NCBI GenBank assembly: GCA_036785375.1
Contig: JAWMAR010000070.1
Coordinates: forward strand, 7,068,001-7,132,000
DNA: 64,000 nucleotides
DNA from: Leucoraja ocellata
Taxonomy: Eukaryota
Reading direction: 5' to 3'
Shown here piece after piece: positions 273 through 57,910 of this stretch; position 1 is the first letter of the stretch; every line of letters starts with the position of its first letter. The notes below the pieces were generated by a model, which made no database searches, was not told where the DNA came from, and was given only the letters and a program-made list of their open reading frames with translations. Made by a program: the position numbers and the translations under genes.

Positions 273-788
273 TCACTTCACTGTCAGCTTGATATTTAGT
301 CTACATTCCTTTTGGCCAGTGAACCAAGCGCAGGAATATATCCCAATATCAGTCTCGAGTAAACCTATGATGACCAACGAGGCATCCCGTGTCCCATCCA
401 CGTTTGTATTCATGAACCTCCAGCGGCCGACCCCCCCTGGATAGGTCGCACCATTCCCTTTAGTAAACACGCCCAGTGTCCCGCTCCCTTTACTCCAGGT
501 GATCACAAAATTCGCGGGTCCAGTCTTCCCTGTGGGTACTTTACAGGGTAGCGTAGCAGAACCACCCCTGCGTGCCGTCACATCCGTGTATTTCATCTTG
601 TTCGCAGCTGGCTTAGCACCGCATTCTGGAGAACTTTGTTTTTTGACTTGTCGAGGCTCTCGTGCGTTCCACCCGGGCAAGTTTGCTTCCTCTCCCCATT
701 CTCTGGAGATCGGACCTGTTCCAGTTGCGGAGACTTGCCACACCATCTCCACAAGGACCATGAATCCTATCCATCTCTGCAGTCCCAT
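273..788 (-). CDS. Secreted single V-type Ig-domain precursor, type A copy 1 (A1), 171 aa from the first ATG
   Basis: Hydrophobic leader MGLQRWIGFMVLVEMVWQVSA, then REPR|Q. V-set motifs are TLPC (B strand), ITW (C strand), DASLVI and DIGIYSC (D-x-G-x-Y-x-C), with the stop right after LTVK. The ATG at 788-786 follows a splice-acceptor-like tttcacccacag|gaac. The ORF track's GTG start at 815 is probably intronic. Confidence 0.85.
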   Translation of the reverse strand: MGLQRWIGFMVLVEMVWQVSATGTGPISREWGEEANLPGWNAREPRQVKKQSSPECGAKPAANKMKYTDVTARRGGSATLPCKVPTGKTGPANFVITWSKGSGTLGVFTKGNGATYPGGVGRWRFMNTNVDGTRDASLVIIGLLETDIGIYSCAWFTGQKECRLNIKLTVK

Positions 789-924
789 GTTCCTGTGGGT
801 GAAACAATGGGTCACCTTATTGCAACTCAGTAGGATTCATGATGACATTCCCTGAAGCTGCTGCCACCACACTGGGCAATGTCGCTGTGCAGCTTCTACA
901 GCTCCCGCCTGGTTTAGTTTAAGT

Positions 925-1335
925 TGCTTTGACCTGTCGTGGACCAACAACATTGAAGTGGCAGCCAAGGAGGCACACCAATGCATCTACTTCCTCAGAG
1001 ACAGAGGAAATACGACAAGTCTCCAATGTCTCTTAGAAACTTCTACAGATGCACCACAGAGAGCAGACTGTGGGGTTGCATCACAGCTTGGTTTGGGAAC
1101 AGCTCTGAGCCCAAGATCACAAGATATTGCAGAGTTGTGGATGGAGCCCAGTCCATCACACAGACCACACTCCCCACCAGTGACTCCATCTACAACCAAA
1201 AAAATCAAAGACTTGTCCCACCCCGGTCATTCCTCCTTCTCCCTGGTCCTGTCTAGCAGACGGTACAGAAGCTTGAAAGCGCGCACCACCAGACTCAGGA
1301 ACAGCTTCTTCCCCTCTGCTATCAGGCTTCTGAAC
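925..1335 (+). mobile_element. Decayed Rex1/Babar-type LINE RT C-terminal fragment in the A1 intron (also ~58047-58457; a shorter piece lies in the other six introns)
   Basis: Frameshifted peptides AHQCIYFLR, FYRCTTES..CITAWFGN and RRYRSLKARTTRLRNSFFPSAIRLLN match the intact element at 59050-59814. Confidence 0.7.
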
Positions 1336-1372
1336 TGGGGGAACAGTGAACAGAGACAATCCCACCCCCATC

Positions 1373-1750
1373 ACTCACAGACACTTGAAGGATCCACAGG
1401 GTTGGTTACCAGCTCCGGAGTCTCCACACAGGGTGACGGGGTCGGTCTTGTTCTCATCTCCTGCCATCGCTCGCTCCTTTTATACCGACTCCCGGCTTCT
1501 CCTGCCCCTCATTGTCTGCCCTCACGTACATTCAACCAATCACTGCCTCCCACGGAGCATTGGCCGGAGTCAGCCGCGACCTCTCCACCCTCTGCCAAAC
1601 GTGTCGTTGCATCAGCCGTTAACGTTTAACAAGAACAACGTCATCCCAGCTGCCAGCGGCCAACCAGGCGCCCCACACATCCTGCTTGTGTCTCCACCAC
1701 GTCTCGCTTTGGCCACCCATCGGACCAGATGTCCCAGCCACGCCACGTCA
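1373..1750 (-). promoter_or_regulatory. Promoter and first exon of A1 (UPRE, ERSE, CCAAT, TATA, splice donor)
   Basis: TGACGTGG at 1750-1743, CCAAT-N9-CCACG at 1536-1554, TATAAAA at 1484-1478 and donor GTGAGT at 1378-1373. The predicted intron is 793-1378. Confidence 0.7.
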
Positions 1751-2724: not shown

Positions 2725-3391
2725 TGATGAAGCCGAATTTTAGTTAAAAATATAAGAAGATATTAAATTGGCTTCTGGGCTAGCTTACAGCTTATATTTA
2801 GTGTCAAATTAAACTTTCCTCAGGTTGCGGGGTGTGTGAGATAACATTGTCTCCCAAGTGAAGGAGCTAGAGAGATATCTTTGAAAGTAAGATGCCATAA
2901 ACCAAATGACCAATGTTTATGGGGGAGGAGGCAATAAAGGAAGAGAGAAATAAACAGTCACATCTTTGTAAACAAATGACCTATGTTTATGAGGGACCAA
3001 ATGACAGAGGAAGCAGCGAAAAGAGCTAGGGTGGTCTATTTGGAGATAAGGCAAATGGCCAATGTTTTTAGTATATCTTGTACCATGTAAAAAAAAGGTT
3101 TGATGTGATGCATTCTGTGGAAACCTTTTCCAGTACCTCTGACCATGACTAATGTCTGTGGAATGTGATAAGGGGACAAAAAAACCCTATTTAAGGCAAT
3201 GTAATTCTGTTGTTAAGGGGAGGTGGCTGAGCACAGTCAAGTGTCTGTGTTGGTCACTTGACTGGAGTTCTCGCTCCCTTCCATCGGCTGATGTTAAGTA
3301 AAGTTTTGAACTGGTCTACCAAACAGTTTGTGTGGTGTCTGTTTATTAAGAAGCGAACCTAGTTTAGTAGTTAAGATAAGTAACTTTTTCA
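2725..3391 (+). repeat. ERV 5' LTR
   Basis: TGATGAAG...CTTTTTCA, followed by a PBS-like TGG. Confidence 0.9.
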
Positions 3392-4406
3392 TTGGCCTAG
3401 TTATGCAGGCCTCGCTGGGACCACATCAACGGCTGACTGTGCAAGAGGTTGCGGAGGTTGCCGGGATTGGAAGGGAGATAACTGAGCTCTATCGGCCCCC
3501 TTGTAAGACCGACTCCCTAGAAACTCCCGGGAACGTCTGTGATCCTTCATCAGACATTGAATTGGTTCCCTGCCGAGGTTCTTAGCAACAGACAAAGGTC
3601 AGACCAGTTGGGCTTTATATGTTTTTTTTAAGAGGGGATTGTGTATGTATTTTTAAGGCAGCATTGTGCATGTATTTTTAAGAAAGGTCTTATGTATATT
3701 GTTAAGAAGGACGTGAGTGGTTCCTCTCTCTCTCTCTGTCTATCTCTCTTTGTTTTTTTCTCTCTCTACTAAGGGCTCATCAGCCTTGTTGAGATATCCG
3801 TGATTTGTCGGGTTGAGATACGGGGGTTGAAGTGTGTGTCTGGCTTATTGAGACATCCGAAGAGTTGTCGGGTTGAGAAATAAGTGACGTTGTATATTAC
3901 AGTATTAAGAAGTCTACCAAGTTGAAAAAAACTGGGGTCTCGGTTAGCGGGTCTGCTTCGTTGAGACACTTGGGTCGTATATTAAAGAGTTAAAAAAGTC
4001 AGCCAAATTGAGAAACTGGGGTCTCATTTAGTGGGTCGGCCTGGTTGATATATTTGGAACGATTTGGAATTAAGAAGTCTGTTTTCTCTCTCTCTCTTTC
4101 TATCTATCTATGGGGAATGCTATTGATACCGGTCCTATATATGTGTTATTTGAATCCTATGTATAATAAGAAATTTAGAATGTTAAGTTACAAGTTGACC
4201 AAATGGTTAGGGGATGAAGCCTGGCCAGTAGGGGGCACATGGAATGTTGAGACAATTAAATAAGCAGAGGTGTTGATATGGGAAAGGAAGACAGGAAAGA
4301 AATGGAAGAAAGGAATTAAAACATGGAAATCAGGAACAGAGGAGAAGCATGAGGAGAGTAGAGTTCGAAGTTGGATGGATACTACATGTAAGAAGGGGAT
4401 AGAGTA

Positions 4407-5437
4407 GGTATGTTACAAAACTTACCTGAATCGTCAATGAGAATCTGCCATCAGGCCGTGTGCGTGATTTTGGCGCTGTTTAGAGGAGACAGGTTTAAAA
4501 CGAGATTTTTACTAGGCTGTTGCAATCGAAAATGTTCAGCCTAGTAAATCATTAACGGAGAATCGCTGGGGGACCCTGTCGCAAAGGGTGTTATTGGTTT
4601 TTATGGCCTTGTATGGTGGTTGTAGTAGTTTGGAGGTCACTCTCTAGATCCGCGACCTCTCGCAGGCCCAGGGTTTTATAAAGCAAACAATTAAAGGTAT
4701 GTACCTTATTTTTACATTAAAAGGGGCTTCTTAAGAACCTTAAAGTTTTCTATAGCGAGTAGCTCATTTTGGGCTTTTTATATCCCGCAGTATTTTTCTG
4801 GGCATTTGAGGGCACAAATCCAGCGCAATGTGAACGTTCTAAACCAGCGCATTCACAGGAACCCACTAGAAAGCAGATTTAAAATAGACTTTAATTTACA
4901 GCAATTGAACACTAAATTCCTTCCATTTGGCCTATAAATTGATGTAAATGAGATTTAAAAATCATGTTTTATTGTGAATTATTTGTGACTATTATTTGGA
5001 CACTTAGGCTATTTAAAAATGTTAATCATTTATTAAGAAATGGATAGATGTTTGGATCTAGTAATTGAAGTTTGAAATTAGCTACAATTGGGTAACTAAC
5101 TAATTATATGCTTTAATTTCAGGTCATCCAAGTAAGATTATTTTATATTTGTTTCAGAATGCTTCAATCTATGATAACTGAAAATTTCATTCAGTTCTCT
5201 TAATTTTTAAGAAGGTTATGGGCTTTTGACTGTCCATGATCACAGTTTTTTTGTTATGTCCATAGAAAATCAATAGGGAACAAGATGCTAATTCCCGAGT
5301 ATGAAAATGGCCATAATTCTTTTATTACTTGAGATATGAAAGTGAATTAGGTGTCAAATTAAACTTATTGTTATGCTTTATCTGATGGGATAAATTGCAG
5401 ACTTGATTTTTTAAATCTCACAATTTTGTAACATTGC
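4407..5437. mobile_element. Non-autonomous DNA transposon (MITE-like, 1031 bp) nested in ERV gag; copies at 10090-11120 and 62484-63514
   Basis: Terminal inverted repeats GGTATGTTACAAAA / TTTTGTAACATTGC match at 12 of 14 positions. TA flanks both sides and the interior is AT-rich and non-coding. Confidence 0.7.
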
Positions 5438-8407
5438 TAGATAGAGTTAAGAAACAAGGATAGCACTCGGAAAGGATGGAAATTAGTGCAACTAGAATGC
5501 CAGTGGGCAGAGGAACAAGAGAATAGAATTAAAAGACAGACAGGAGGTGAGAAACAAGTGATGGTTCGTAAAAAATAAACCCAGTACTGGTAAATCCTCT
5601 GGAGGAGACTTCATGTCTGGCACGACAACCCTATTTGGTAATGAAGATGAGGAGTTAGATAATCTTGAGAGATGTCTACCAGTAGCAATGGCATCTTTAC
5701 CTGGGACAGTTCCGTCAGTAACATCCCTATAACTTGAAGTTCTGACATTACAAAGCTCCCCAGGATTGGGAGCACGGGAATCCCTTTCTGTGTGTAATTT
5801 GTTAAGGCATTGATGCTACCAGAACAGCTGGTCATTATTAAATGTACTGCACACACTGGTGCTGGGGACCCTATAGCAAAAGGCAATGAGTTGCCGATAG
5901 TGTATCCAAACAGGCAGCCTGTACATCCAAATGCATAGTGACAGCAGCTAAACAGATGCTAGCAAATAGAACGGTCCTGCCAAACATGAGGGAGGTATGT
6001 ACATTACAGAGGGACGCCTCTTATATATAAAATAATTATGGAAACAAGAGGGCTGTGCCATTAATTCAGCACACCCCGCTTGGACAAGTTGGTGTATACG
6101 ATACATTTTTACCCGTCTTACCCATGCTGGTAAGGAGGGAATGATAGGATAACAAAGGAAATGTGGTGGCACAACAGAAAATTTGATAAGAGGCACTGAA
6201 GCAGGCCTCTGAATGTAAAATTTGCCAATGAAATAATCCAGGCAAACCAATTAGGATACCCTCAGGGGTGACGCCAATGCCATCATGATCGTTTGAATGC
6301 ATACAGATTGATTTTATTGAGATGCCAAGGGCCCAGTGTTATAAATATTGCGTATTGATTTTAGATTTATTTAGTAGGTGGAGTGAAGCTCTACCAACCA
6401 CCAATAATAAGGAAAATGTGCACATTTTAATATCTGACAGAAATTCACTGTACACACCACCCACTGGTATCTGGGATGGTGGAAAGAGTCAATGGGGATT
6501 GCAAAACAAAATTACCCCGGAGGTAAATCCTTTTCCTGACAAGCAACTATGTTATAAAAATTGGGGATGAAGGAAAATTCAATGGAGAAATGAGGATAGG
6601 ATAGGGAGACTGAATAGTCAAGGGCAGTCTGACTAATCATGATCTGGATCAATGTCCAATTAGGGTTAGGTGACCAGGATTTTGGTCAACAGAAGTCTTG
6701 TCAGAAAAAGGGAAAGTAAATTACAAAGAGATGTCTTTGAAGATGAAATATTATATACTGCTGGTAAAACAATGTTTTTGTATATGTACTGCTTGTAAAA
6801 CAATGTTTTTTGTATGTGGAATGTGTGAAATTCGAAGCAATGAGCAAAGTTGTGTGTCGCTTTAAATAGTTTGTCCTTTAAAATGCAAATAGACAAAGTT
6901 TATGGTGTGCTCAGTTAAAGAAACAGGCATGAATGGGGGGGTGGAGCTATACTCGATGATAAAATGTGTTGGTTGATTATAAATCTTTTAAACCAAGTTT
7001 AAAAAAAAAGACTCATCCCGATTAAAGTGTTAAATGAGATTGGAAATGTCAAAATTACAGAGAAAAGAAAATGTATTATTGATTACTGATTCTGAATGAG
7101 TTTTTTTGGGAAAGATTGTTTTGATATGATAACAGAGGTTGTCTTTTAAAATGTAAATGAAGCAAGATTACTGTTTTCAAGCAAACAAAAAGATGTTGCT
7201 GTAGCATGTGCTGTGTGAGTGAAATGAAGGTAGATGAAAAATTGTTTTATGACTTAAAAAAGGGGGTTTGAGGGAACTCACAATGAGGGATGAAAGGTGA
7301 GAAGATAAAGTAGATTGGGGAAGAGAACATATTTGGAGAATTGAATATTTAGGTGGGGAGAGCCTCTTTGGATATAATCGGATTAAAGGATAAATTCACA
7401 GGGAAGTGTTAAGAAGGGACTGGAGATACTGGAGGATCAAAGGGGGACAAAAGTGCTGGAGAAACAGCTGGTGAACAAGATTCACAACTTTTTATTGATA
7501 CAGGAAAAGCTGCTCTGTCCACCCCCTGGAGAGTGGGGGAAAGCCACCTACAGGCCCTGGGCAATTAACTAATTATGTATGGTCGGCAATTAACCCATGT
7601 CTTGCCAGATCTACATTCCCAGGTTGGAGGAGTTTTTGCTGGAAACCAGTGACCAAGGCCATAAAGGCTATACGATGGGGGTGCTGGGACAAGAAGAAAT
7701 TGAGACTGTTGAAAGAAACAACCAAGTGTTGCTAACAACATGAACTGCTGTAAAGATGAAAGATCATCGTCGCTGGATACATTTGATTGACTGTGAACAG
7801 TTTGTGGAAACAAGGACGATGGGCTATTGATGCTCCCTTTATTCTGGGGTAGCCCAGCCCACATGGACTGAACTTTCTTCAGAATGGCAAACTTGCAGAC
7901 TAACCTACATTTAAAGGATGGTACACACCTCCTTTTAAAAAAGATTGAAGTCAAACATGACAAGCGCAGCAAAGATACCCTGACTACGGACAGTAAGAGG
8001 TCTGCAAAGGCCAGTTAAATCTACCTGTTTTTGCCACAACCAAGGCACTGGTGTATATTAAGGAAACAGTATATTTGTGACAGGGCATTGTTATGTTGCA
8101 AATGCAGTGCCACACAAGAGAAGCATGAACCAGTTACACCAGCACACAGGGAATTCCAAATGAAGCCGAATAAAGGCTGAGCAATTTTTATGAACCTTTT
8201 CCTGTCCTATGGTAGTATCTTAGTGTCACATCCGGGGGAGGTTGGTGGCCATTTAAAATGTTTGGAGGGACTTGTGAAACGATTGTCCACTATGAATTGA
8301 TTGTGCTACTAGTGTACTATTAATTTGTCTGATGAGATGCTTATGGTCTTTCGTATGTACTCAGGAAGGACTGCAGTTGTTATCAAAATTTTGATAAAAG
8401 GATGGAA

Positions 8408-9074
8408 TGATGAAGCCGAATTTTAGTTAAAAATATAAGAAGATATTAAATTGGCTTCTGGGCTAGCTTACAGCTTATATTTAGTGTCAAATTAAACTTT
8501 CCTCAGGTTGCGGGGTGTGTGAGATAACATTGTCTCCCAAGTGAAGGAGCTAGAGAGATATCTTTGAAAGTAAGATGCCATAAACCAAATGACCAATGTT
8601 TATGGGGGAGGAGGCAATAAAGGAAGAGAGAAATAAACAGTCACATCTTTGTAAACAAATGACCTATGTTTATGAGGGACCAAATGACAGAGGAAGCAGC
8701 GAAAAGAGCTAGGGTGGTCTATTTGGAGATAAGGCAAATGGCCAATGTTTTTAGTATATCTTGTACCATGTAAAAAAAAGGTTTGATGTGATGCATTCTG
8801 TGGAAACCTTTTCCAGTACCTCTGACCATGACTAATGTCTGTGGAATGTGATAAGGGGACAAAAAAACCCTATTTAAGGCAATGTAATTCTGTTGTTAAG
8901 GGGAGGTGGCTGAGCACAGTCAAGTGTCTGTGTTGGTCACTTGACTGGAGTTCTCGCTCCCTTCCATCGGCTGATGTTAAGTAAAGTTTTGAACTGGTCT
9001 ACCAAACAGTTTGTGTGGTGTCTGTTTATTAAGAAGCGAACCTAGTTTAGTAGTTAAGATAAGTAACTTTTTCA
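8408..9074 (+). repeat. ERV shared middle LTR
   Basis: Offset 5683 bp from LTR1, preceded by the PPT and followed by the PBS. Confidence 0.9.
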
Positions 9075-12000
9075 TTGGCCTAGTTATGCAGGCCTCGCTG
9101 GGACCACATCAACGGCTGACTGTGCAAGAGGTTGCGGAGGTTGCCGGGATTGGAAGGGAGATAACTGAGCTCTATCGGCCCCCTTGTAAGACCGACTCCC
9201 TAGAAACTCCCGGGAACGTCTGTGATCCTTCATCAGACATTGAATTGGTTCCCTGCCGAGGTTCTTAGCAACAGACAAAGGTCAGACCAGTTGGGCTTTA
9301 TATGTTTTTTTTAAGAGGGGATTGTGTATGTATTTTTAAGGCAGCATTGTGCATGTATTTTTAAGAAAGGTCTTATGTATATTGTTAAGAAGGACGTGAG
9401 TGGTTCCTCTCTCTCTCTCTGTCTATCTCTCTTTGTTTTTTTCTCTCTCTACTAAGGGCTCATCAGCCTTGTTGAGATATCCGTGATTTGTCGGGTTGAG
9501 ATACGGGGGTTGAAGTGTGTGTCTGGCTTATTGAGACATCCGAAGAGTTGTCGGGTTGAGAAATAAGTGACGTTGTATATTACAGTATTAAGAAGTCTAC
9601 CAAGTTGAAAAAAACTGGGGTCTCGGTTAGCGGGTCTGCTTCGTTGAGACACTTGGGTCGTATATTAAAGAGTTAAAAAAGTCAGCCAAATTGAGAAACT
9701 GGGGTCTCATTTAGTGGGTCGGCCTGGTTGATATATTTGGAACGATTCGGAATTAAGAAGTCTGTTTTCTCTCTCTCTCTTTCTATCTATCTATGGGGAA
9801 TGCTATTGATACCGGTCCTATATATGTGTTATTTGAATCCTATGTATAATAAGAAATTTAGAATGTTAAGTTACAAGTTGACCAAATGGTTAGGGGATGA
9901 AGCCTGGCCAGTAGGGGGCACATGGAATGTTGAGACAATTAAATAAGCAGAGGTGTTGATATGGGAAAGGAAGACAGGAAAGAAATGGAAGAAAGGAATT
10001 AAAACATGGAAATCAGGAACAGAGGAGAAGCATGAGGAGAGTAGAGTTCGAAGTTGGATGGATACTACATGTAAGAAGGGGATAGAGTAGGTATGTTACA
10101 AAACTTACCTGAATCGTCAATGAGAATCTGCCATCAGGCCGTGTGCGTGATTTTGGCGCTGTTTAGAGGAGACAGGTTTAAAACGAGATTTTTACTAGGC
10201 TGTTGCAATCGAAAATGTTCAGCCTAGTAAATCATTAACGGAGAATCACTGGGGGACCCCGTCGCAAAGGGTGTTATTGGTTTTTATGGCCTTGTATGGT
10301 GGTTGTAGTAGTTTGGAGGTCACTCTCTAGATCCGCGACCTCTCGCAGGCCCAGGGTTTTATAAAGCAAACAATTAAAGGTATGTACCTTATTTTTACAT
10401 TAAAAGGGGCTTCTTAAGAACCTTAAAGTTTTCTATAGCGAGTAGCTCATTTTGGGCTTTTTATATCCCGCAGTATTTTTCTGGGCATTTGAGGGCACAA
10501 ATCCAGCGCAATGTGAACGTTCTAAACCAGCGCATTCACAGGAACCCACTAGAAAGCAGATTTAAAATAGACTTTAATTTACAGCAATTGAACACTAAAT
10601 TCCTTCCATTTGGCCTATAAATTGATGTAAATGAGATTTAAAAATCATGTTTTATTGTGAATTATTTGTGACTATTATTTGGACACTTAGGCTATTTAAA
10701 AATGTTAATCATTTATTAAGAAATGGATAGATGTTTGGATCTAGTAATTGAAGTTTGAAATTAGCTACAATTGGGTAACTAACTAATTATATGCTTTAAT
10801 TTCAGGTCATCCAAGTAAGATTATTTTATATTTGTTTCAGAATGCTTCAATCTATGATAACTGAAAATTTCATTCAGTTCTCTTAATTTTTAAGAAGGTT
10901 ATGGGCTTTTGACTGTCCATGATCACAGTTTTTTTGTTATGTCCATAGAAAATCAATAGGGAACAAGATGCTAATTCCCGAGTATGAAAATGGCCATAAT
11001 TCTTTTATTACTTGAGATATGAAAGTGAATTAGGTGTCAAATTAAACTTATTGTTATGCTTTATCTGATGGGATAAATTGCAGACTTGATTTTTTAAATC
11101 TCACAATTTTGTAACATTGCTAGATAGAGTTAAGAAACAAGGATAGCACTCGGAAAGGATGGAAATTAGTGCAACTAGAATGCCAGTGGGCAGAGGAACA
11201 AGAGAATAGAATTAAAAGACAGACAGGAGGTGAGAAACAAGTGATGGTTCGTAAAAAATAAACCCAGTACTGGTAAATCCTCTGGAGGAGACTTCATGTC
11301 TGGCACGACAACCCTATTTGGTAATGAAGATGAGGAGTTAGATAATCTTGAGAGATGTCTACCAGTAGCAATGGCATCTTTACCTGGGACAGTTCCGTCA
11401 GTAACATCCCTATAACTTGAAGTTCTGACATTACAAAGCTCCCCAGGATTGGGAGCACGGGAATCCCTTTCTGTGTGTAATTTGTTAAGGCATTGATGCT
11501 ACCAGAACAGCTGGTCATTATTAAATGTACTGCACACACTGGTGCTGGGGACCCTATAGCAAAAGGCAATGAGTTGCCGATAGTGTATCCAAACAGGCAG
11601 CCTGTACATCCAAATGCATAGTGACAGCAGCTAAACAGATGCTAGCAAATAGAACGGTCCTGCCAAACATGAGGGAGGTATGTACATTACAGAGGGACGC
11701 CTCTTATATATAAAATAATTATGGAAACAAGAGGGCTGTGCCATTAATTCAGCACACCCCGCTTGGACAAGTTGGTGTATACGATACATTTTTACCCGTC
11801 TTACCCATGCTGGTAAGGAGGGAATGATAGGATAACAAAGGAAATGTGGTGGCACAACAGAAAATTTGATAAGAGGCACTGAAGCAGGCCTCTGAATGTA
11901 AAATTTGCCAATGAAATAATCCAGGCAAACCAATTAGGATACCCTCAGGGGTGACGCCAATGCCATCATGATCGTTTGAATGCATACAGATTGATTTTAT

Positions 12001-14090
12001 TGAGATGCCAAGGGCCCAGTGTTATAAATATTGCGTATTGATTTTAGATTTATTTAGTAGGTGGAGTGAAGCTCTACCAACCACCAATAATAAGGAAAAT
12101 GTGCACATTTTAATATCTGACAGAAATTCACTGTACACACCACCCACTGGTATCTGGGATGGTGGAAAGAGTCAATGGGGATTGCAAAACAAAATTACCC
12201 CGGAGGTAAATCCTTTTCCTGACAAGCAACTATGTTATAAAAATTGGGGATGAAGGAAAATTCAATGGAGAAATGAGGATAGGATAGGGAGACTGAATAG
12301 TCAAGGGCAGTCTGACTAATCATGATCTGGATCAATGTCCAATTAGGGTTAGGTGACCAGGATTTTGGTCAACAGAAGTCTTGTCAGAAAAAGGGAAAGT
12401 AAATTACAAAGAGATGTCTTTGAAGATGAAATATTATATACTGCTGGTAAAACAATGTTTTTGTATATGTACTGCTTGTAAAACAATGTTTTTTGTATGT
12501 GGAATGTGTGAAATTCGAAGCAATGAGCAAAGTTGTGTGTCGCTTTAAATAGTTTGTCCTTTAAAATGCAAATAGACAAAGTTTATGGTGTGCTCAGTTA
12601 AAGAAACAGGCATGAATGGGGGGGTGGAGCTATACTCGATGATAAAATGTGTTGGTTGATTATAAATCTTTTAAACCAAGTTTAAAAAAAAAGACTCATC
12701 CCGATTAAAGTGTTAAATGAGATTGGAAATGTCAAAATTACAGAGAAAAGAAAATGTATTATTGATTACTGATTCTGAATGAGTTTTTTTGGGAAAGATT
12801 GTTTTGATATGATAACAGAGGTTGTCTTTTAAAATGTAAATGAAGCAAGATTACTGTTTTCAAGCAAACAAAAAGATGTTGCTGTAGCATGTGCTGTGTG
12901 AGTGAAATGAAGGTAGATGAAAAATTGTTTTATGACTTAAAAAAGGGGGTTTGAGGGAACTCACAATGAGGGATGAAAGGTGAGAAGATAAAGTAGATTG
13001 GGGAAGAGAACATATTTGGAGAATTGAATATTTAGGTGGGGAGAGCCTCTTTGGATATAATCGGATTAAAGGATAAATTCACAGGGAAGTGTTAAGAAGG
13101 GACTGGAGATACTGGAGGATCAAAGGGGGACAAAAGTGCTGGAGAAACAGCTGGTGAACAAGATTCACAACTTTTTATTGATACAGGAAAAGCTGCTCTG
13201 TCCACCCCCTGGAGAGTGGGGGAAAGCCACCTACAGGCCCTGGGCAATTAACTAATTATGTATGGTCGGCAATTAACCCATGTCTTGCCAGATCTACATT
13301 CCCAGGTTGGAGGAGTTTTTGCTGGAAACCAGTGACCAAGGCCATAAAGGCTATACGATGGGGGTGCTGGGACAAGAAGAAATTGAGACTGTTGAAAGAA
13401 ACAACCAAGTGTTGCTAACAACATGAACTGCTGTAAAGATGAAAGATCATCGTCGCTGGATACATTTGATTGACTGTGAACAGTTTGTGGAAACAAGGAC
13501 GATGGGCTATTGATGCTCCCTTTATTCTGGGGTAGCCCAGCCCACATGGACTGAACTTTCTTCAGAATGGCAAACTTGCAGACTAACCTACATTTAAAGG
13601 ATGGTACACACCTCCTTTTAAAAAAGATTGAAGTCAAACATGACAAGCGCAGCAAAGATACCCTGACTACGGACAGTAAGAGGTCTGCAAAGGCCAGTTA
13701 AATCTACCTGTTTTTGCCACAACCAAGGCACTGGTGTATATTAAGGAAACAGTATATTTGTGACAGGGCATTGTTATGTTGCAAATGCAGTGCCACACAA
13801 GAGAAGCATGAACCAGTTACACCAGCACACAGGGAATTCCAAATGAAGCCGAATAAAGGCTGAGCAATTTTTATGAACCTTTTCCTGTCCTATGGTAGTA
13901 TCTTAGTGTCACATCCGGGGGAGGTTGGTGGCCATTTAAAATGTTTGGAGGGACTTGTGAAACGATTGTCCACTATGAATTGATTGTGCTACTAGTGTAC
14001 TATTAATTTGTCTGATGAGATGCTTATGGTCTTTCGTATGTACTCAGGAAGGACTGCAGTTGTTATCAAAATTTTGATAAAAGGATGGAA

Positions 14091-19755: not shown

Positions 19756-19829
19756 GTTCCTGTGGGTGAAACAATGGGTCACCTTATTGCAACTCAGTAG
19801 GATTCATGATGACATTCCCTGAACCCGCC

Positions 19830-43014: not shown

Positions 43015-43558
43015 GATGGGGGTGGGATTGTCTCTGTTCACTGTTCCCCCAGTTCAGAAGCCTGATAGCAGAGGGGAAGAAGCTGTTCCTGAGTCTGGTG
43101 GTGCGCGCTTTCAAGCTTCTGTACCTTCTGCTAGAGAGGACCAGGGAGAAGGAGGAATGACCGGGGTGGGACAAGTGATGGAGTCATAGAGTCACAGCGA
43201 GACCTTCGGCCCAACTTGCCCGCGCCCACCAACGTGTCCCCATCAATACTAGACCCACCTGCCTGCGTTTGGCCCTTACCCCTCTAATCCTGTCCTATCA
43301 ATGTACCTGTCTAACTGTTTCTTAATCATTGTGATAGTACCTGCCTCAACTACCTCTTCCGGCAGCTCGTTCCAAACACCCTCCACCCTTTGTGTAAAAA
43401 AGTCACCCCTCAGTTTCCCATGAAATCTTTCCCCCCCCCCTCGCCTTAAACCGATGTCCTCTGGTTCTCGATTCCCCAACTCTGGGCGGGTTCAGGGAAT
43501 GTCATCATGAATCCTACTGAGTTGCAATAAGGTGACCCATTGTTTCACCCACAGGAAC

Positions 43559-44095
43559 ATGGGACTGCAGAGATGGATAGGATTCATGGTCCTTGTGGAG
43601 ATGGTGTGGCAAGTCTCCGCAACTGGAACAGGTCCGATCTCCAGAGAATGGGGAGAGGAAGCAAACTTGGCCGGGCGGAACGCACGGGCTCCTCGACAAG
43701 TCACCAATGAAACGCTTCCAAGATGCACGAACGAGTCAGATTCTGATGCCATCAGTCATCACCTATCAACGATTAACAAGAAGGTGCTCGTTGCATCTCT
43801 GGGTGGTTCTGTTACTTTGCCATGTAATGTATCCAACGTTGACAATAGTCCCGAGGTTACATGGAATAAAGATGGTGTTGAAATTGCCTATTTCCATAGT
43901 AGAGTGCATGAGCGTTATACAGGATCTGATGTTCACTGGAAGTTCGTGCAACGAAACGTCCTTTGGGAACAGGACGCCACGTTGCTCCTGACAGGTGTAA
44001 AAGAGGAAGATAAAGGGACGTATTCCTGTGTTTGGATCAAGTATCGTCAGAAACCGGTTTGTGAATTATTGATGCAGCTGATGATCTCTCACTGA
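43559..44095 (+). CDS. Secreted single V-type Ig-domain precursor, type B copy 4 (B4), protein identical to B3
   Basis: Same translation as B3, with a few synonymous differences. Confidence 0.85.
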   Translation: MGLQRWIGFMVLVEMVWQVSATGTGPISREWGEEANLAGRNARAPRQVTNETLPRCTNESDSDAISHHLSTINKKVLVASLGGSVTLPCNVSNVDNSPEVTWNKDGVEIAYFHSRVHERYTGSDVHWKFVQRNVLWEQDATLLLTGVKEEDKGTYSCVWIKYRQKPVCELLMQLMISH

Positions 44096-46475: not shown

Positions 46476-48279
46476 GTCCCTTGCAGTCAGAAACAAGTGA
46501 ATTGATCATGGGGAACAAGGACATGGCAGACCAATTGAATAACTACTTTGGTTCTGTCTTCACTAAGGAAGACATAAATAATCTGCCGGAAATAGCAGGG
46601 GACCGGAGGTCAAATGAGATGGAGGAACTGAGTGAAATCCAGGTTAGCCGGGAAGTGGTGGTAGGTAAATTGAATGAATTAAAAGCCGATAAATCCCCAG
46701 GGCCAGATAGGTTGTATCCCAGAGTACTTAAGGAAATAGCCCCAGAAATAGTGGATGCATTAGTGATAATTTTTCAAAACTCTAGATTTGGAAGTAGTTC
46801 CTGAGGATTGGAGGGTAGCTAATGTAACACCACATTTTAAAAAGAGAGGGAGAGAGAAAATGGGGAATTACAGACCAGTTAGTCTAACGTTGGTAGTGGG
46901 GAAACTGCTAGAATCAGTTATTAAAGATGGGATAGTAGCACATTTGGAAAGTGGTGAAATCATTGGACAAAGTCAGCATGGATTTATGAAGGGTAAATCA
47001 TGTCTGACGAATCTTATAGAATTTTTCGAGGATGTAACTAGTAGCGTGGATAGGGGAGAACCAGTGGATGTGGTGTATCTGGACTTTCAGAAGGCTTTCG
47101 ACAAGGTCCCACATAAGAGATTAGTATACAAACTTAAAGCACACGGTATTGGGGGTTCAGTATTGATGTGGATAGAGAACTGGCTGGCAGACAGGAAGCA
47201 AAGAGTAGGAGTAAACGGGTCCTTTTCACAATGGCAGGCAGTGACTAGTGGGGTACCGCAAGGCTCAGTTCTGGGACCCCAGTTATTTACGGTATATATT
47301 AATGATTTGGACGAGGGAATTGAATGCAACATCTCCAAGTTTGTGGATGACACAAAGCTGGGGGCAGTGTTAGCTGTGAGGAGGATGCTAGGAGGCTGCA
47401 AGGTGACTTGGATAGGCTGGGTGAGTGGGCAAATGCATGGCAGATGCAGAATAATGTGGATAAATGTGAGGTTATCCACTTTGGTGGCAAAAACAGGAAA
47501 TTAGACTATTATCTGAATGGTGGCCGATTAGGAAAGGGGGAGATGCAACGAGACCTGGGTGTCATGGTGCACCAGTCATTAAAAGTAGGCATGCAGGTGC
47601 AGCAGGCAGTGAAGAAGGCGAATGGTATATTAGCATTCATAGTAAAAGGATTTGAGTATAGGAGCAGGGAGGTTCTACTGCAGTTGTACATGCTCTTGGT
47701 GAGACCACACCTGGAGTATTGCGTACAGTTTTGGTCTCTTAATCTGAGGAAAGACATTCTTGCCATAGAGGGAGTACAGAGAAGGCTCACCAGATTGATT
47801 CCTGGGATGTCAGGACTTTCATATGACGAAAGACTGGATAGACTCGGTTTGTACTCGCTAGAATTTAGAAGATTGAGGGGGGATCTTATAGAAACTTACA
47901 AAATTCTTAAGGGGTTGGACAGGCTAGATGCAGGAAAATTGTTCCCGATCTTGGGGAAGTCCAGAACAAGGGGTCACAGTTTAAGGATAAGGAGGAAATC
48001 TTTTGGGGCCGAGATGAGGAAAACTTTTTTCACACAGAGAGTGGTGAATCTGTGGAATTCTCTGCTGCAGAAGGTAGTTGAGGCCACAGTTCATTGGCTA
48101 TATTTAAGTGGGAGTTAGATGTGGCCCTTGTGGCTAAATGGATCAGGTGGTATGGAGAGAACGCAGGTACAGGATACTGAGTTGGATGATCTGCCATGAT
48201 CATATTGAATGGCGGTGCAGGCTCGAAGGGCCGAATGGCCTACTCCTGCACCTATTAGCTATGTTTCTATGTTTCTATG
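46476..48279 (+). mobile_element. 5'-truncated CR1 LINE, duplicate of the 26112-27907 insertion
   Basis: Same junctions (ttcag|gtccc ... tatg|ttcag) and RT motifs, with frameshifts. Confidence 0.9.
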
Positions 48280-50490: not shown

Positions 50491-50824
50491 CGAGACGTGG
50501 TGGAGACACAAGCAGGATGTGTGGGGCGCCTGGTTGGCCGCTGGCAGCTGGGATGACGTTGTTCTTGTTAAACGTTAACGGCTGATGCAACGACACGTTT
50601 GGCAGAGGGTGGAGAGGTCGCGGCTGACTCCGGCCAATGCTCCGTGGGAGGCAGTGATTGGTTGAATGTACGTGAGGGCAGACAATGAGGGGCAGGAGAA
50701 GCCGGGAGTCGGTATAAAAGGAGCGAGCGATGGCAGGAGATGAGAACAAGACCGACCCCGTCACCCTGTGTGGAGACTCCGGAGCTGGTAACCAACCCTG
50801 TGGATCCTTCAAGTGTCTGTGAGT
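50491..50824 (+). promoter_or_regulatory. Promoter and first exon of type C copy
   Basis: ERSE at 50643-50661, TATAAAA at 50713-50719 and donor at 50819. Confidence 0.7.
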
Positions 50825-51379
50825 GATGGGGGTGGGATTGTCTCTGTTCACTGTTCCCCCAGTTCAGAAGCCTGATAGCAGAGGGGAAGAAGCTGTTCCT
50901 GAGTCTGGTGGTGCGCGCTTTCAAGCTTCTGTACCTTCTGCTAGACAGGACCAGGGAGAAGGAGGAATGACCGGGGTGGGACAAGTGATGGAGTCATAGA
51001 GTCACAGCGAGACCTTTGGCCCAACTTGCCCGCGCCCACCAACGTGTCCCCATCAATACTAGACCCACCTGCCTGCGTTTGGCCCTTACCCCTCTAATCC
51101 TGTCCTATCAATGTACCTGTCTAACTGTTTCTTAATCATTGTGATAGTACCTGCCTCAACTACCTCTTCCGGCAGCTCGTTCCAAACACCCTCCACCCTT
51201 TGTGTAAAAAAGTCACCCCTCAGTTTCCCATTAAATCTTCCCCCCCCCCCCCCCCCCCCCCTCGCCTTAAACCGATGTCCTCTGGTTCTCGATTCCCCAA
51301 CTCTGGGCGGGTTCAGGGAATGTCATCATGAATCCTACTGAGTTGCAATAAGGTGACCCATTGTTTCACCCACAGGAAC

Positions 51380-51929
51380 ATGGGACTGCAGAGATGGATA
51401 GGATTCATGGTCCTTGTGGAGATGGCGTGGCAAGTCTCCGCAACTGGAACAGGTCCGATCTCCAGAGAATGGGGAGAGGAAGCAAACTTGGCCGGGTGGA
51501 ACGCACGGGCCCCTCGGCAAGTCACCAATGAACCGCTTCCAAGATGCACGAACGAGTCAGATTCTGACAATGATCACGGTGCATCGAATAGCGATATTAG
51601 GCTCATTGCATCTCCGGGTGATTCTTTGACGCTGCCCTGTAAAATATCCAAAGATTACAAACAACTCTGGTTAGTTCAGTGGAGACAAAACGATGTTGAA
51701 ATTGACAATTATAATGAGAAAACGTATGATGAATATACGGGATCTGATGTCCGCTGGATATTTGTGGATCTAGAATTCCTTTGGGACTGGGACGGCTCGT
51801 TGCTCCTGAGGCATAAAAGAGAAAGATGAAGGGATATATTCCTGTGTTTGGTTCATTGATACTCATGTGTTATGTGAAGAATTGGCCCAGCTGACAATCC
51901 TCCCAGTGATTCAGCAGGGCCCGACCTAG
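51380..51929 (+). pseudogene. Divergent acidic type C Ig-domain paralog with a 2-bp frameshift at ~51809
   Basis: ctg-a--ggc-ata versus ctg-aca-ggt-gta in B. Restoring 2 nt gives GIKEKDEGIYSCVWFIDTHVLCEELAQLTILPVIQQGPT*. As sequenced it stops at 51829, before the F-strand Cys. Confidence 0.8.
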
Positions 51930-52993: not shown

Positions 52994-55900
52994 TGTAATC
53001 TGTGTAGTGAGTAGACTACACCTATTATGCGCGTTATATTATCAAGAGCTTGCCTCCGCTAGTTTGTACGAGTAGCTACTAGGAAATGCAATGTCCTGCA
53101 GATCTATGCTGTAAGTAGATTTAATAAACATGTGTTGTATCTTGATATGTGTCCGACTCAGCTCATTACATGATGTCCACCATGTCATGTTTTTTTAATT
53201 AGTTTATGTGTCTACTATATCCATCATGACACATTTTTGTCGCCTTCCTAGTCCTGTGATCTTTGACTCTGACGTCTTTTCGAGCATGACTACGCTCATT
53301 ATGCTGGCATTGTTCATCGCAACGACCCCCCCCCAATGTGCGTGCTTTTGTGTTGCTCAACTTAGCGGGACCTGAAGCTATGAATCGCGCTGGCAATTTC
53401 ACATTTGAGCCTGCTGTTCTGGATGCTAATGGTCAGGTCCTGGCGCCTGCTGAGACGAATGACGACCCTGCTGTCTTTCTTGCAAAGTTCAGATGGTTGT
53501 GTGATCTGCACTCAAACTATATTATTGAACGGAGGTACACAAAAATGCTGGAGAAACTCAGCGGGTGCAGCAGCATCTGTGGAGCGAAGGAAATAGGCGA
53601 CGTTTCGGGCCGAAACCCTTCCGGGTTTCGGCCCGAAACGTTGCCTATTTCTAGAAGTGTTTCGGGACGAAACGTTGCCTATTTACTTCGCTCCATAGAT
53701 GCTGCTGCACCTGCTGAGTTTCTCCAGCATTTTTGTCTACCTTTGTTCCATTTGATCTTCCGTTTGTGCACGTCGAGTTGATTGCATTAGTCGAAACAGG
53801 GCGGACCTCGTGAAGGTTGCAATCTTCAACCCCTGACATATGACGAAAGAATGGATCGACTGTGCTTGTATTCACTGGAATTTAGGATGAGACTGGAACT
53901 TATAAAAACATATAAAATTCTTAAGGGATCGGACAGACTAGATAGATGCAGGAAAAATATTCCCGATGTTGGGGGAGTCCAGAACCAGTGGTCACACAGT
54001 TTAAGAATAAGGTCTCGGCCATTTAGGACTGAGATGAAAAAAAACCTTTTCACCCAGAGAGTTGTGAATCTGTGGAATTCTCTGCCACAGAAGGCAGTGG
54101 AGGCCAATTCACTGGATGTTCTCAAGAGAGAGTTAGATTAAGCTCTTAGTGCTAACGTAATCAAGGGATATGGGGAGAAAGCAGGAACGGGGTAATGATT
54201 TAGGATGTTCAGCCATGATCATATTGAATGGCGGTGCTGGCTCGAGGGGCCGAATGGCCTCCTCCTGCACCAATTTTCTATGTTTCTGCACAATCCCAAC
54301 AAGGGTCAAAACTGGACTCTAATCAGCTGCTGCAACTGTGCAAGAGGCCAATGTAAGGGAGGCTCAGTGATACAGCTGTAGAGTTGCTGCCGTACAGCGC
54401 TAGTGACCCGGGTTCAATGCTGACTGTAGGTACTGTCTGTACGGTGGTTGTACTTTTTCCCTATGACCGTGAGGGTTTCGCCCAGGTGCTACAGTTTCCT
54501 CACAGATGTCAAAGACGTGCAGGTTTGTAGGTTAATTGGCTTCAGTAAATTGTCCCTTGTGTGTAGGTTAGAACTAGTGTACGGGCGATCACTCAAGTTC
54601 AAGTGTTTAAGAGAGATTATTGTCATGTGTCCCTGATAGGACAATGAAATTCTTGCTTTGCTTCAGCACAACAGAACATAGTAGGCATTTACTACAGAAC
54701 AGATCAGAGTTTCTCCAGCATTTTTGTGTACCTTTGATCTTCCAGCATCTGCAGTTCCTTCTTGAGCATATTATTGAACGGACCAAGTTTTATGCTCGTA
54801 TGCAACAGGTTGGTGAACCAAAGGTTTTATCAGTGACTTAAAACAAATGGCTGCACGCTGCTGATTTCAAGATCTCTGCGATGAACTCATCCATGACAAA
54901 CTTGTCGGAGGAATGCTTGATAGCAAGTTACGGGGTGAACTTCTTTGTAATACTGACCTAACCCTTAATCAAGCAGAGCATGCCTGTTGGATGCTGAGAT
55001 AACATCTTCCCACACTGAGTCTGTGTCCTCTGGTCACTGTTCGCAGCATAGTGTTAATCTTGCAGACTACTCCTCTTGTAACACCCACACAAGGTCTGTT
55101 CGATGTCAAAATTGCAACTATTTTCTTGCTAGGTGTCAGCAGTTCTGCGTTGCTTATGGTAAAGCCTGTAATTTCTGCAAGAAGTTAAACCACTTTTCTC
55201 GATGCTGCCGTTCCCGTGTGACTCAAGCAGCGTCAAGGATGAGCCTGCACCTGCTGCAACATGAGCTTGTTGATAATGACTTCCAAGAGCTTGATTTGCC
55301 ATCCCCCGCTCCACTCTCAGAAAGTACAGATACCAGTTCTGCAACCCATTCTCCCCTCCCTTCGTCTAACAAGCAACTTGACCCTGAGGTAACCATGTTT
55401 GTGATTAACAGGCCTTTAATCGCTAAGGTTGATACTGGCACAAAATGCAATGTCATCTCGTTAACAGAGTTTTAAAAATTCGTTATGCTGCATGTATTGA
55501 AAAGGCCTCGGCCACGCTTTGGACTTACGGGGGAGATGTTCTACACCCTCTTGGACAAGCTGATTTAAAGTGCACCATAGACAAGCAGACTCATACTTTA
55601 AAGGTTTATATTGTTAAGGGGGATTCAGAGACTTTGCTCAGTATCAACGCAATCCACGATCTAGGCCTGGTATAGTTTGGCTACGCCGTCCATCAAGACT
55701 TTCTCGCTGATGGACACACTCAACAGGTACTCTCTCAATACAAAGATCTGTTTAACGCCAAGCTTAGCAAATTGCCTATCAAATACCACATTGTTGTCGA
55801 TCCCAACATAACTCCTGTGGTCCGAGAACCGCATCATGCTCTGCACGCCATGCGTGGCAGAGTAAACAATGAACTCAAGCGGATGGTCTCCATGGGTGTT

Positions 55901-56607
55901 ATTGCCGAGGTTACAGACCCATCTGACTGGGTTTCCACAATGGTGGTCGCAACAAAGAAAAACAAAGAGGAGATCCATATCTGCATAAACCCCAGAGACC
56001 TTAACTGCCATCAAACGGCCACACTACCCAATGCGATTATTAGAGGAAGTTGCTGCTCAGGTAGGCAACACATCAGTATTCTCCATTCTGGATGCCAAGA
56101 GCTCATTTTGGAAGATTCCACTGGACCCAGACACGTCAAATCTCATTTCATTCGGCACCCCCTTTGGCCGATACAAATTTCTGAGAATGCCCTTTGGCAT
56201 CAACTCTGCCAGCGACGTTTTCCAGCGCACGATGGAACAATTGTTTGTTGAGTACCCATGTGCCATCATTGTTGATGACATTCTCGTCTACAGACGTGAT
56301 TGGACTGAACATGACGCCAATCTGAAGAAAGAACTATACAATGCCAAAGACATTCAGCTCAAACTCAATCCCTTGAAGGGCAAGTTTCGAGTTCCAGAAG
56401 ATACTGACGTTGGACATGTCTTCACAAGTGATGGTCTCAGACCAGACCCATCCAAAACTGCACCTATCAACAAAATGCCGGTTCCTTGGAATGGTCAACT
56501 ACCAGGGGAAATTTATTCCCAACCTCAGCGACATATCTGCCCCCTGTGGGAACTGACACACAAGGACGCTGCATGGTCATGGTATCCGCAGCACCAAAGA
56601 GTTTTCC
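52994..56607 (+). mobile_element. Decayed, 3'-truncated Ty3/Gypsy LTR retrotransposon
   Basis: 177-bp LTR TGTAAT...ATTACA (52994-53170) containing AATAAA. Gag has NYIIER|TKFYARMQQ and a CNFCKKLNHFSRCC zinc knuckle. The protease motif is KVDTG, and RT reads FSILDAKSSFW..YKFLRMPFG..IVDDILV. Confidence 0.85.
53534..54767. mobile_element. Composite 1.2-kb insertion in Gypsy gag (palindrome arms, CR1 piece and SINE) with a 15-bp flanking direct repeat
   Basis: ATATTATTGAACGGA occurs at 53519-53533 and 54768-54782. The interior is an inverted copy of ~15290-16330. Confidence 0.75.
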
Positions 56608-57394
56608 ATCAACCGTTCCTCAGCCCACCTGGCCATTATTTCAGGATGCTGCTGCAATTTATCACAACCATCTCCACTATCTGCAAAACCGCCTACTTTT
56701 GTGTCATCTCCCTTTACTTCTGTCCCTGTTTTGTTCCTGACAACATTCCCTTTTACTTTTGTTCCTGTTCTCAACACCTGCGGACTCCATGATTTTCCAC
56801 ATGTTGTTCCGGCCCCGTGTGGTCATGGACAATGTTGGACACAGCTCATAGAAGCCGGCGATGTTGCCCGTAGTGAGCAAGAGTTGCACAAAGTTCACAC
56901 CCAACTCAATGCCGGCGTACAAAGAATCACTCACACCGGCTGTCTTCAAGAGAGTTTATTTCCATTAATGATACATTTACCGATGCAAGCACGATCTGTC
57001 CCATTGCACTACATTTGCCCCATATCCCCCTAAACCTTTCCCTGTCCCAAGTGTGTATTAAATATTGTTACAATTCCCACCCCACCAGACAGTTCTATAA
57101 ACCCACCGCCCCCTGAGTGAAAATGTTGCCCTTCAGGTTCCTATTAAATCTTGCCCCTCTAACCTTAAACTTATGTCCCCCTGGTTCTTGATTCCCGTAC
57201 CCCAGGTAAAATATGTTTTGTGTTCACCCCTCTATTCCCCACATGATGAATTAAGTGACTACAATATAGAATGCTGTTGTTGGCCTAAGTATGTGGAGTT
57301 TATAATGATGGATGTTATTGTGTGTTTGTGCTGTCCTGCCACTGCCTGTTGCTTCTGTCACATGGGGGGGCCTGTGCTGGGTCAGTGTGAGGTT

Positions 57395-57910
57395 TCACTT
57401 CACTGTCAGCTTGATATTTAGTCTACATTCCTTTTGGCCAGTGAACCAAGAGCAGGAATATATCCCAATATCAGTCTCGAGTAAACCTATGATGACCAAC
57501 GAGGCATCCCGTGTCCCATCCACGTTTGTATTCATGAACCTCCAGCGGCCGACCCCCCCTGGATAAGTCGCTCCTTTCCCTTTAGTAAACACGCCCAGTA
57601 TCCCGCTCCCTTTACTCCAGGTGATCATAAAATCCGCGGGTCCAGTCTTCCCTGTGGGTACTTTACAGGGTAGCGTAGCAGAACCACCCTTGCGTGCCGT
57701 CACATCCGTGAATTTCATCTTGGTCGCAGCTGGCTTAGCACCGCATTCTGGAGAACTTTGTTTTTTGACTTGTCGAGGCTCCCGTGCGTTCCACCCGGGC
57801 AAGTTTGCTTCCTCTCCCCATTCTCTGGAGATCGGACCTGTTCCAGTTGCGGAGACTTGCCACACCATCTCCACAAGGACCATGAATCCTATCCATCTCT
57901 GCAGTCCCAT
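57395..57910 (-). CDS. Secreted single V-type Ig-domain precursor, type A copy 3 (A3), 171 aa
   Basis: Same architecture as A1, with 8 amino-acid differences, all in the mature domain. Confidence 0.85.
   Translation of the reverse strand: MGLQRWIGFMVLVEMVWQVSATGTGPISREWGEEANLPGWNAREPRQVKKQSSPECGAKPAATKMKFTDVTARKGGSATLPCKVPTGKTGPADFMITWSKGSGILGVFTKGKGATYPGGVGRWRFMNTNVDGTRDASLVIIGLLETDIGIYSCSWFTGQKECRLNIKLTVK

Follow-up and report, generated by a model that had tools for sequence, protein, structure and literature searches.

Background

Amphioxus VCBPs are secreted, non-rearranging and diversified V-domain proteins of innate recognition, built from two V domains and a chitin-binding domain. 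The teleost gene SITR is reported to be a germline-encoded member of the immunoglobulin superfamily within a multigene family; its product lacks both a transmembrane (TM) segment and signalling motifs, is secreted and has been connected with host defence. Conotoxins and the frog-skin or cathelicidin-type peptides follow a prepro design, in which a nearly invariant leader and pro-region precede a hypervariable mature part. Among the proteins whose V domains come closest in fold and profile to those described here, CAR (CXADR; through its first domain, D1), JAML, CD226, PVR and the nectins are membrane proteins with two or three immunoglobulin (Ig) domains, a TM segment and a tail. Here we compare these systems with an array of eight paralogous genes for small single-V-domain proteins in a cartilaginous fish, a member of the oldest lineage with antibodies. 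The array lies in a 64,000-nucleotide stretch of the genome of the skate Leucoraja ocellata (assembly GCA_036785375.1, contig JAWMAR010000070.1, positions 7,068,001 to 7,132,000 of the forward strand), which is referred to below as the window and numbered from its first letter.

The array shares with the amphioxus VCBPs the design of a secreted V-domain protein, predicted in our case, and no relation between the two emerged in any search run here. SITR is likened to it by description only and differs in having two Ig domains and a CD300-like V domain. With the conotoxin and cathelicidin design the array genes share a nearly invariant leader and linker ahead of a variable mature part, and in one of their two types an acidic linker ahead of a basic domain; their mature part, however, is no short peptide but a folded Ig domain some 110 residues long. 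Moreover, conservation of the leader in the window reflects exchange of DNA and not selection on the peptide alone, because the promoter and the intron are conserved too. In contrast to the CAR and nectin group, the array genes encode one domain, stop after the G strand, and have an extra pair of cysteines and an N-terminal disordered linker. With moderate confidence, we read the array as part of a batoid-restricted family of secreted single-V proteins that is under diversifying selection and carries a homogenised promoter-leader cassette, with host defence as its most likely role.

Results

Predicted proteins and their fold

A preliminary description of the window had placed eight paralogs in it, and all eight open reading frames (ORFs) were found at the positions it gave (Table 1). 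Three of them, type A, lie on the minus strand and five, type B, on the plus strand. Seven copies are intact and one, B5, is frameshifted; the same seven match the Pfam V-set family (PF07686) at 29.4-41.2 bits with a cut-off of 26, and B5 falls below it. The proposal of small single-V-domain proteins with a leader, encoded in the germline by a family that expands in tandem, is thus upheld, by eight ORFs of which seven are recognised as V-set. The order of the predicted precursor is a leader, a linker of about 27 residues, an arm with the invariant Cys56 and the V domain. The leader contains Arg5, a hydrophobic core and the residues V-S-A before residue 22. Over their whole length types A and B share 46-49% identity, yet 41 of the first 48 residues are invariant across all eight copies. 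N-glycosylation sequons are absent from type A, which combines a basic mature part (isoelectric point (pI) 9.4-9.9) with an acidic linker (pI 4.9); type B carries 1-3 of them and is close to neutral. In most copies an R-x-P-R motif precedes Q or V; B1 has AYFK at this place, LOC129708937 of Leucoraja erinacea has SYWH and the relative from Narcine bancroftii is without the P4 Arg. A propeptide is therefore no more than possible, and the terms propeptide-bearing and secreted in the preliminary description are predictions and not observations. Judged from its sequence, the product would be a soluble protein of 16-18 kDa, and it is predicted to be secreted.

In AlphaFold2 models of A1 and B3 the V domain reached a predicted local distance difference test score (pLDDT) of about 71-92 per block of ten residues, and the N-terminal part stayed below 50 (residues 1-49 in A1, residues 1-52 and 58-71 in B3). 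Strands A', B, C, C', C'', D, E, F and G are present in both models, and the cysteines of strands B and F and the tryptophan of strand C are invariant. Both models show a short bridge at residues 55-56, and the fourth invariant cysteine stands at the start of the G strand; hence, a disulfide between Cys56 and the G-strand cysteine is likely on the models.

The preliminary description had also reported the absence of a TM segment, of an FGxG J motif, of a recombination signal sequence (RSS) and of a C domain, and our analysis agrees with it. No TM-like segment was found, the sole internal hydrophobic peaks being the beta strands of the Ig fold; the RSS heptamer CAC[A/T]GTG was found in none of the eight copies within -60/+120 nt of the 3' end; and no copy has an FGxG motif. 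In both types the stop codon follows directly after the G strand, where there is no usable splice donor, so that the ORF holds no C domain (the intergenic DNA was not searched exhaustively for C exons). Candidate poly(A) signals, AATAAA or ATTAAA, lie 299-435 nt past the stop.

Relatives among predicted proteins

Apart from the location of exon 1, described below, all searches used the exon-2 ORF alone. A word-indexed set of 5.8 billion proteins, which sees only proteins of 0.55-1.75 times the length of the query, returned as matches of comparable size only seven skate clusters and one protein of Narcine. Six of the skate clusters are from Leucoraja erinacea (LOC129708937-46, all labelled 'uncharacterized') and one is from Rhinoraja longicauda (LOC144605155), with E-values of 3e-96 to 7.5e-36. 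The Narcine bancroftii protein (XP_069798310, labelled 'nectin-1-like') has 218 residues and one V-set domain and matches the family profile at 4.3e-61. Identity to the window copies is 45-92% for the skate proteins and 30-35% for Narcine, and no relative is identical to any window copy. At this 30-35% identity the four cysteines and the core Trp, Tyr and Asp positions are invariant from skates to Narcine. Furthermore, a profile search against 1.84 billion representatives gave many multi-Ig proteins, with full-length single-domain matches numbering two in the best 150, both from batoids; single-domain relatives of weaker score may rank lower. Rajiformes and Torpediniformes both stand within Batoidea, and the family is restricted to batoids among the predicted proteins covered by these searches.

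The batoid gene models have the same full-length colinear order, with leader, linker, arm cysteine and one V domain, and those of the three other species end at the same point after the G strand. They are predictions without described function, and those of Leucoraja erinacea add 31 N-terminal residues from exon 1 that we judge to be untranslated. The preliminary description recognised no known family in these genes, and the profile, fold and large protein-set searches gave no full-length match to a characterised one. The further suggestion that the family might be undescribed holds in the sense that no characterised family matched it, but not in the sense of novelty to databases: it is already there as automatic models ('uncharacterized', 'nectin-1-like') from three batoid species, and is unstudied rather than unseen. 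Nothing on this family was found in the literature, where supplementary tables of skate genome papers, which our search did not cover, might list it.

Foldseek against the PDB gave CAR D1 as the best match (3.8e-09), followed by JAML, CD226, PVR, PD-L1 and nectin, and a profile search of the PDB gave JAML (2.6e-11) and CD226 (5.7e-11). Taken together, the V domains of CAR, JAML, CD226, PVR and nectins match with Foldseek values of 3.8e-09 to about 1e-06, a TM-score to the target of about 0.7 and profile E-values of 2.6e-11 to 1e-08. The likeness to solved structures is nevertheless generic (18-30% identity), and PD-L1, TIM-4 and the sodium-channel beta subunits score almost as well. In the ESM Atlas nothing but generic V-set clusters was found (0.92-0.94). 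Membership in the nectins (V-C2-C2, TM segment, tail) is ruled out by the single V domain, the lack of a TM-like segment and the end after the G strand. Membership in the CTX/JAM/CAR group (V and C2 domains, TM segment) is ruled out likewise, as the likeness is one of fold only and there is neither a second domain nor a TM segment. A viral origin found no support either, because BFVD yielded only viral Ig domains of a generic kind, with weaker matches than those to cellular proteins.

Gene structure and promoter

The preliminary description placed leader, linker and a full V-set domain on a single exon that is not interrupted and ends at the G strand. This is so for the seven intact copies, which hold all three in one ORF of exon 2, and fails for the frameshifted B5, which falls short of the Pfam cut-off. 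The implied single-exon gene, however, has to be abandoned. Database proteins used as tblastn queries placed the piece of 31 additional residues of the Leucoraja erinacea models upstream of all eight ORFs, at a distance of 545-590 bp and with 100% identity, and since this conserved upstream exon comes with a donor and an acceptor, the genes consist of two exons and not one. In B1 the intron spans 543 bp and its acceptor (...cacccacag) ends at 23363, the acceptor sitting 4 nt ahead of the exon-2 ATG.

The TATA box of B1, GGTATAAAAGG, starts only 17 nt before the ATG at which the models of Leucoraja erinacea begin. With the usual spacing between a TATA box and the transcription start, this ATG is probably upstream of the transcription start, which would thus lie downstream of it. 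The short exon 1 is therefore probably non-coding, and the protein probably starts at MGLQRW in exon 2. In B1 this second ATG has a good context (A at -3, G at +4). A start at the second methionine also fits the models from the other two species, because the Rhinoraja model starts there and the Narcine model has an N-terminal extension without clear similarity, with the second methionine and the leader conserved.

About 50 nt upstream of the TATA box, all eight genes carry a perfect match to the endoplasmic reticulum (ER) stress-type element (ERSE) CCAAT-N9-CCACG, for which 0.12 would be expected by chance, the eight being copies of one cassette and counting as one event. This consensus is reported to be bound by NF-Y and ATF6 (PMC5890977). 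Reading the conserved promoter by eye (22490-22720 in B1 and its copies), we also noted a second, forward CCAAT box and, as possible targets of bZIP factors, several sites with an ACGT core (..GACGTGG.., ..TGACGT.., ..TACGTGA..).

The 5' part of intron 1 contains, at the same place in all eight genes (22860-22986 in B1), an antisense fragment coding for the C-terminal tail motif of a reverse transcriptase of a long interspersed nuclear element (LINE). The same motif ends the reverse-transcriptase ORF at 59050-59814. Long ORFs opposite exon 1, such as 958-1629 and 22570-22986, are read-through of this LINE fragment and not genes; the one opposite-strand ORF scanned against Pfam (958-1629) gave no match.

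Diversification and exchange of DNA

Between B1 and B2 the promoter is 100%, the intron 98-100% and the 3' flank 98% identical, whereas the mature coding part is 86.5% identical. A1 and A2 are 99.6% identical in the 3' flank and 99.3% in the leader, with 89.4% in the mature part. Overall the mature part differs 5-18 times more than the flanks. In this part we counted 35.3 non-synonymous against 3.7 synonymous changes for A1-A2 and 47.8 against 5.2 for B1-B2, which gave ratios of non-synonymous to synonymous rates (dN/dS) of 3.20 and 2.76, respectively. The ratio was 2.31 for A2-A3 and 2.05 for B1-B3, and 1.26-1.41 for closer pairs; B3 and B4, which encode identical proteins, show zero non-synonymous changes. 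One-sided Fisher tests, based on approximated site counts, gave p = 0.025 for A1-A2 and p = 0.005 for B1-B2, the two independent pairs, and p = 0.033 and 0.036 for the overlapping pairs A2-A3 and B1-B3.

The variable positions of type B fall into five blocks, four and a singleton (p<1e-4, permutation). Placed on the B3 model, they cover the end of strand B through the BC loop with alternate residues of the C strand, the C'-C'' stretch, the DE region and the turn from F through FG to G. In V domains the BC, C'C'', DE and FG loops generally come together on the side used for binding. Diversification of the mature part is thus supported by dN/dS above 1 and, in type B, by the clustering of the variable positions.

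Synonymous divergence in the V part (0.04-0.08) is above the divergence of the flanks (0.5-2%). Furthermore, in a tree of the mature parts B1 groups with LOC129708939 of Leucoraja erinacea (96/90), apart from B2-B4, and A1 and A3 group with LOC129708942 (88/84). The V lineages would from this grouping predate the split of the species, whereas their flanks look young. In our reading of these sequences, recombination or gene conversion has homogenised the flanks and spared the V part. Types A and B are 97.8-100% identical in the promoter, exon 1 and the intron ends and 93-96% in the leader, but 53-55% in the mature part, and their 3' flanks cannot be aligned. The middle of the A2 intron is 96.8% identical to B1 and 40.5% to A1, while the A2 3' flank is 99.6% identical to A1. 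Exchange of the cassette between types is therefore directly visible, because A2 joins a B-type intron to an A-type V domain and 3' flank.

Discussion

The reading that we favour can be put as follows. A TATA box and an ER-stress-type element would be followed by a short exon 1, and exon 2 would encode a cleavable-looking signal peptide, a nearly invariant linker of about 27 residues that is predicted to be disordered, an arm with a cysteine and one V-set domain. Professional secretory cells would make the proteins, with factors of the unfolded protein response (UPR) driving the putative promoter. Recombination or gene conversion would keep the cassette from promoter to leader nearly identical in all copies, even across types A and B, while the V domain would be kept diverse, with changes in type B around the BC, C'C'', DE and FG loops and the adjoining residues of the C, C'' and F/G strands. 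The outcome would be a germline repertoire of secreted binders facing fast-changing targets. A bolder proposal, which we regard as conceivable but doubtful, is that skates and rays, which belong to the oldest jawed vertebrates, maintain beside their immunoglobulins a large, non-rearranging set of soluble recognition proteins. Each would be a germline-encoded V domain on its own, comparable to an 'innate nanobody'; selection would diversify the binding loops, and exchange of DNA would keep identical in all copies one cassette wired to secretion and the UPR.

If our reading is true, a second, non-rearranging family of secreted single-V proteins would bear on how V domains are used in soluble recognition, and it would offer a natural source of small, stable, single-domain binders. 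The design itself is unusual, with V domains that have diverged to 46-49% protein identity behind a near-identical promoter-leader cassette, and it would make a clean case of region-limited gene conversion against diversifying selection. Moreover, the ER-stress element would give a direct and testable handle on regulation.

Several observations weigh against this reading. The selection tests have few synonymous changes to build on and include pairs that are not independent, gene conversion can distort pairwise dN/dS, and the close pairs B2-B3 (p = 0.35) and A1-A3 (p = 0.57) show no significant excess of non-synonymous change. The variable sites of type A are not clustered (13 blocks, p = 0.85, permutation), and the comparison of variable sites outside and inside strands is marginal or not significant (p = 0.086, 0.20, 0.073 and 0.029; 0.05 and 0.11 in a second test). 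The predicted signal peptide has a Glu within its hydrophobic core and is only moderately hydrophobic. The ERSE is one event that was copied eight times, and its activity is putative. Furthermore, no observation singles out immunity over other settings in which genes evolve fast.

RNA reads are to be set on the same side. We aligned reads to 19150-24000, the part of the window with A2 and B1, at 90% likeness from two raw RNA-seq sets (X21 and X24, comprising a polyA run and an oligo-dT run with about 6% and 5% of their reads sampled, of unknown tissues and not shown to be from the species of the window) and from two sets of contigs (X1 and X6). In all four sets depth was 0 in the bins of the mature domains and 3' flanks of A2 and B1, in exon 1 of A2 and in the B1 promoter. 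Two leader bins had a depth of 0.12-0.35 in X21. The bin with exon 1 of B1 was covered in all four sets, at a depth of 1.6-5.8 in the RNA runs, but it says nothing on exon 1 because it also holds the intronic LINE fragment. The remaining reads, numbering thousands, fell on transposon fragments between the genes, and from such fragments also came the word share of about 0.10 by which X1 and X6 had been picked. We take the RNA result as weak negative evidence. The transposon fragments between A2 and B1 (20770-22400) were themselves covered on both strands at a depth of hundreds to thousands, with peak bins of up to about 3,900 in X21 and 6,300 in X24.

Among the alternatives, the one that survives best is that the array encodes secreted proteins of reproduction or of a specialised gland (clasper, oviducal gland, egg case or semen) that evolve fast under sexual selection or conflict and not because of pathogens. 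Genes of that kind could equally form a tandem family confined to one lineage, encode small secreted proteins with dN/dS above 1 and have a promoter of the type of heavily secreting cells, and absence from two bulk RNA runs would be expected if expression were restricted to such a tissue. Nevertheless, V lineages that cross species and a hypervariability concentrated in blocks toward the loops would rather be expected of a recognition repertoire, though not of such a repertoire only, and we consider this alternative unlikely. Still less probable to us is that the proteins are soluble ligands or decoys for the animal's own receptors of the nectin, CAR, JAM or CD226 type, tuning adhesion or immune signalling or decoying viruses. 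The nearest folds and profiles are indeed the V domains of this group, the NCBI pipeline named the Narcine member after a nectin, and the variation of type B lies on the C, C'' and FG side, by which receptors of the CAR and nectin type bind. The generic nature of the likeness, with PD-L1, TIM-4 and the sodium-channel beta subunits nearly equal at 18-30% identity, speaks against such a relation, and many divergent copies would be ill-suited to a single conserved host receptor.

It is very unlikely that the proteins are membrane-anchored, starting at the exon-1 ATG with 31 more residues so that the hydrophobic segment becomes a type II signal anchor. Such a start is the one given in six of the seven skate clusters, all of them from Leucoraja erinacea, and it is in frame across the splice. 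Against it stand the TATA box only 17 nt before this ATG, the start of the Rhinoraja model at the second methionine, the dissimilar extension of the Narcine model, in which the second methionine and the leader are conserved, and the small residues at -3 and -1 (V-S-A), which fit cleavage by signal peptidase. We see only a slim chance that the copies are silent relics, left by recent segmental duplication with an Ig exon, in which the excess of changes would come from relaxed constraint and gene conversion. The essential lack of reads on the exons, the frameshift in one of eight copies and an array full of transposons and duplications of 93-99% identity would agree with this. The seven intact ORFs and the fold-defining residues that are invariant from skates to the electric ray at 30-35% identity argue against it, however, as do a mature part 5-18 times more divergent than neutral flanks, which is beyond relaxed constraint alone, and dN/dS values above 1 and not near 1. 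Rearranging V segments of antigen receptors, or germline-joined genes for Ig, T-cell receptors (TCR) or IgNAR, could be called to mind by the V-set fold and by a G-strand end that resembles that of a J segment (...KLTV), and are ruled out by the absence of the RSS (0/8) and of FGxG, the unsplit leader, the stop after the G strand and nearest folds that are V domains of adhesion type and not of Ig or TCR.

Layout of the array and interspersed elements

The units of type B stand in tandem with a spacing of about 6.5-7.8 kb; those of B1-B4 are mutually 94.8-98.9% identical over long matches, and that of B5 is 89.5-93.4% identical to them. Past its frameshift B5 still encodes the F and G strands in a different frame, as far as about 51911, and this copy is either a pseudogene or an assembly error. 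A2 and B1 are oriented head to head.

Table 1. Positions of the promoter cores and exons of the array genes in the window, with the ORF span of each copy (aa, amino acids; CDS, coding sequence; UTR, untranslated region).
Feature	Position	Strand	ORF span	Details
A1 exon 2	273-792	-	273-788	4-nt 5'UTR and CDS of 171 aa; ATG 788, stop 275-273; Pfam V-set 32.6 bits
A1 promoter core and exon 1	1379-1554	-		ERSE 1536-1554; TATA about 17 nt before Gnomon ATG 1467; exon 1 end 1379; donor GT 1378
A2 exon 2	19243-19759	-	19243-19755	CDS of 170 aa; mosaic, B-like intron with A-type V domain and 3' flank
A2 promoter core and exon 1	20305-20480	-		ERSE 20462-20480; exon 1 end 20305
B1 promoter core and exon 1	22645-22820	+		ERSE 22645-22663; TATA start 22715; Gnomon upstream ATG 22732; exon 1 end 22820; donor GTGAGT 22821
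B1 exon 2	23364-23907	+	23368-23907	CDS of 179 aa, ATG 23368; nearest relative Leucoraja erinacea LOC129708939
B2 promoter core and exon 1	29783-29958	+		ERSE 29783-29801
B2 exon 2	30503-31043	+	30507-31043	CDS of 178 aa
B3 promoter core and exon 1	36289-36464	+		ERSE 36289-36307
B3 exon 2	37010-37550	+	37014-37550	CDS of 178 aa
B4 promoter core and exon 1	42833-43008	+		ERSE 42833-42851
B4 exon 2	43555-44095	+	43559-44095	CDS of 178 aa; protein identical to B3
B5 promoter core and exon 1	50643-50818	+		ERSE 50643-50661
B5 exon 2, pseudogene	51376-51911	+	51380-51829	2-bp deletion after E strand; ORF stop at 51829
A3 exon 2	57395-57914	-	57395-57910	CDS of 171 aa; 95% identity to A1
A3 promoter core and exon 1	58501-58676	-		ERSE 58658-58676

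A1 and A3 lie inside a duplication that is 98.8-99.7% identical. A GC-poor unit with a period of 5,683 bp occupies 2725-14757, where two stretches of 6,350 bp overlap and are 99.8% identical, and a further copy at 99.7-99.9% identity lies beside A3 (59809-64000). A1 and A3 thus belong to a large recent duplication, since copies of the GC-poor unit flank both. A stretch of 41 nt that follows the stop codon immediately in A2 and A3 is missing from A1 (window 232-272).

Retroelement-like ORFs, split over several frames, lie at 54987-56792 and include a zinc-knuckle-like ORF and a reverse-transcriptase ORF (RVT_1, 1.8e-13), in an element that looks decayed. In addition, LINE-type reverse-transcriptase ORFs (RVT_1, 3.2e-27 and 6.9e-08) were found at 26117-27716, 46481-48118 and 59050-59814, the last of which has a second Pfam match, to ALKBH8_N (1.1e-15), a family name that is unexpected for the C-terminal region of a LINE.

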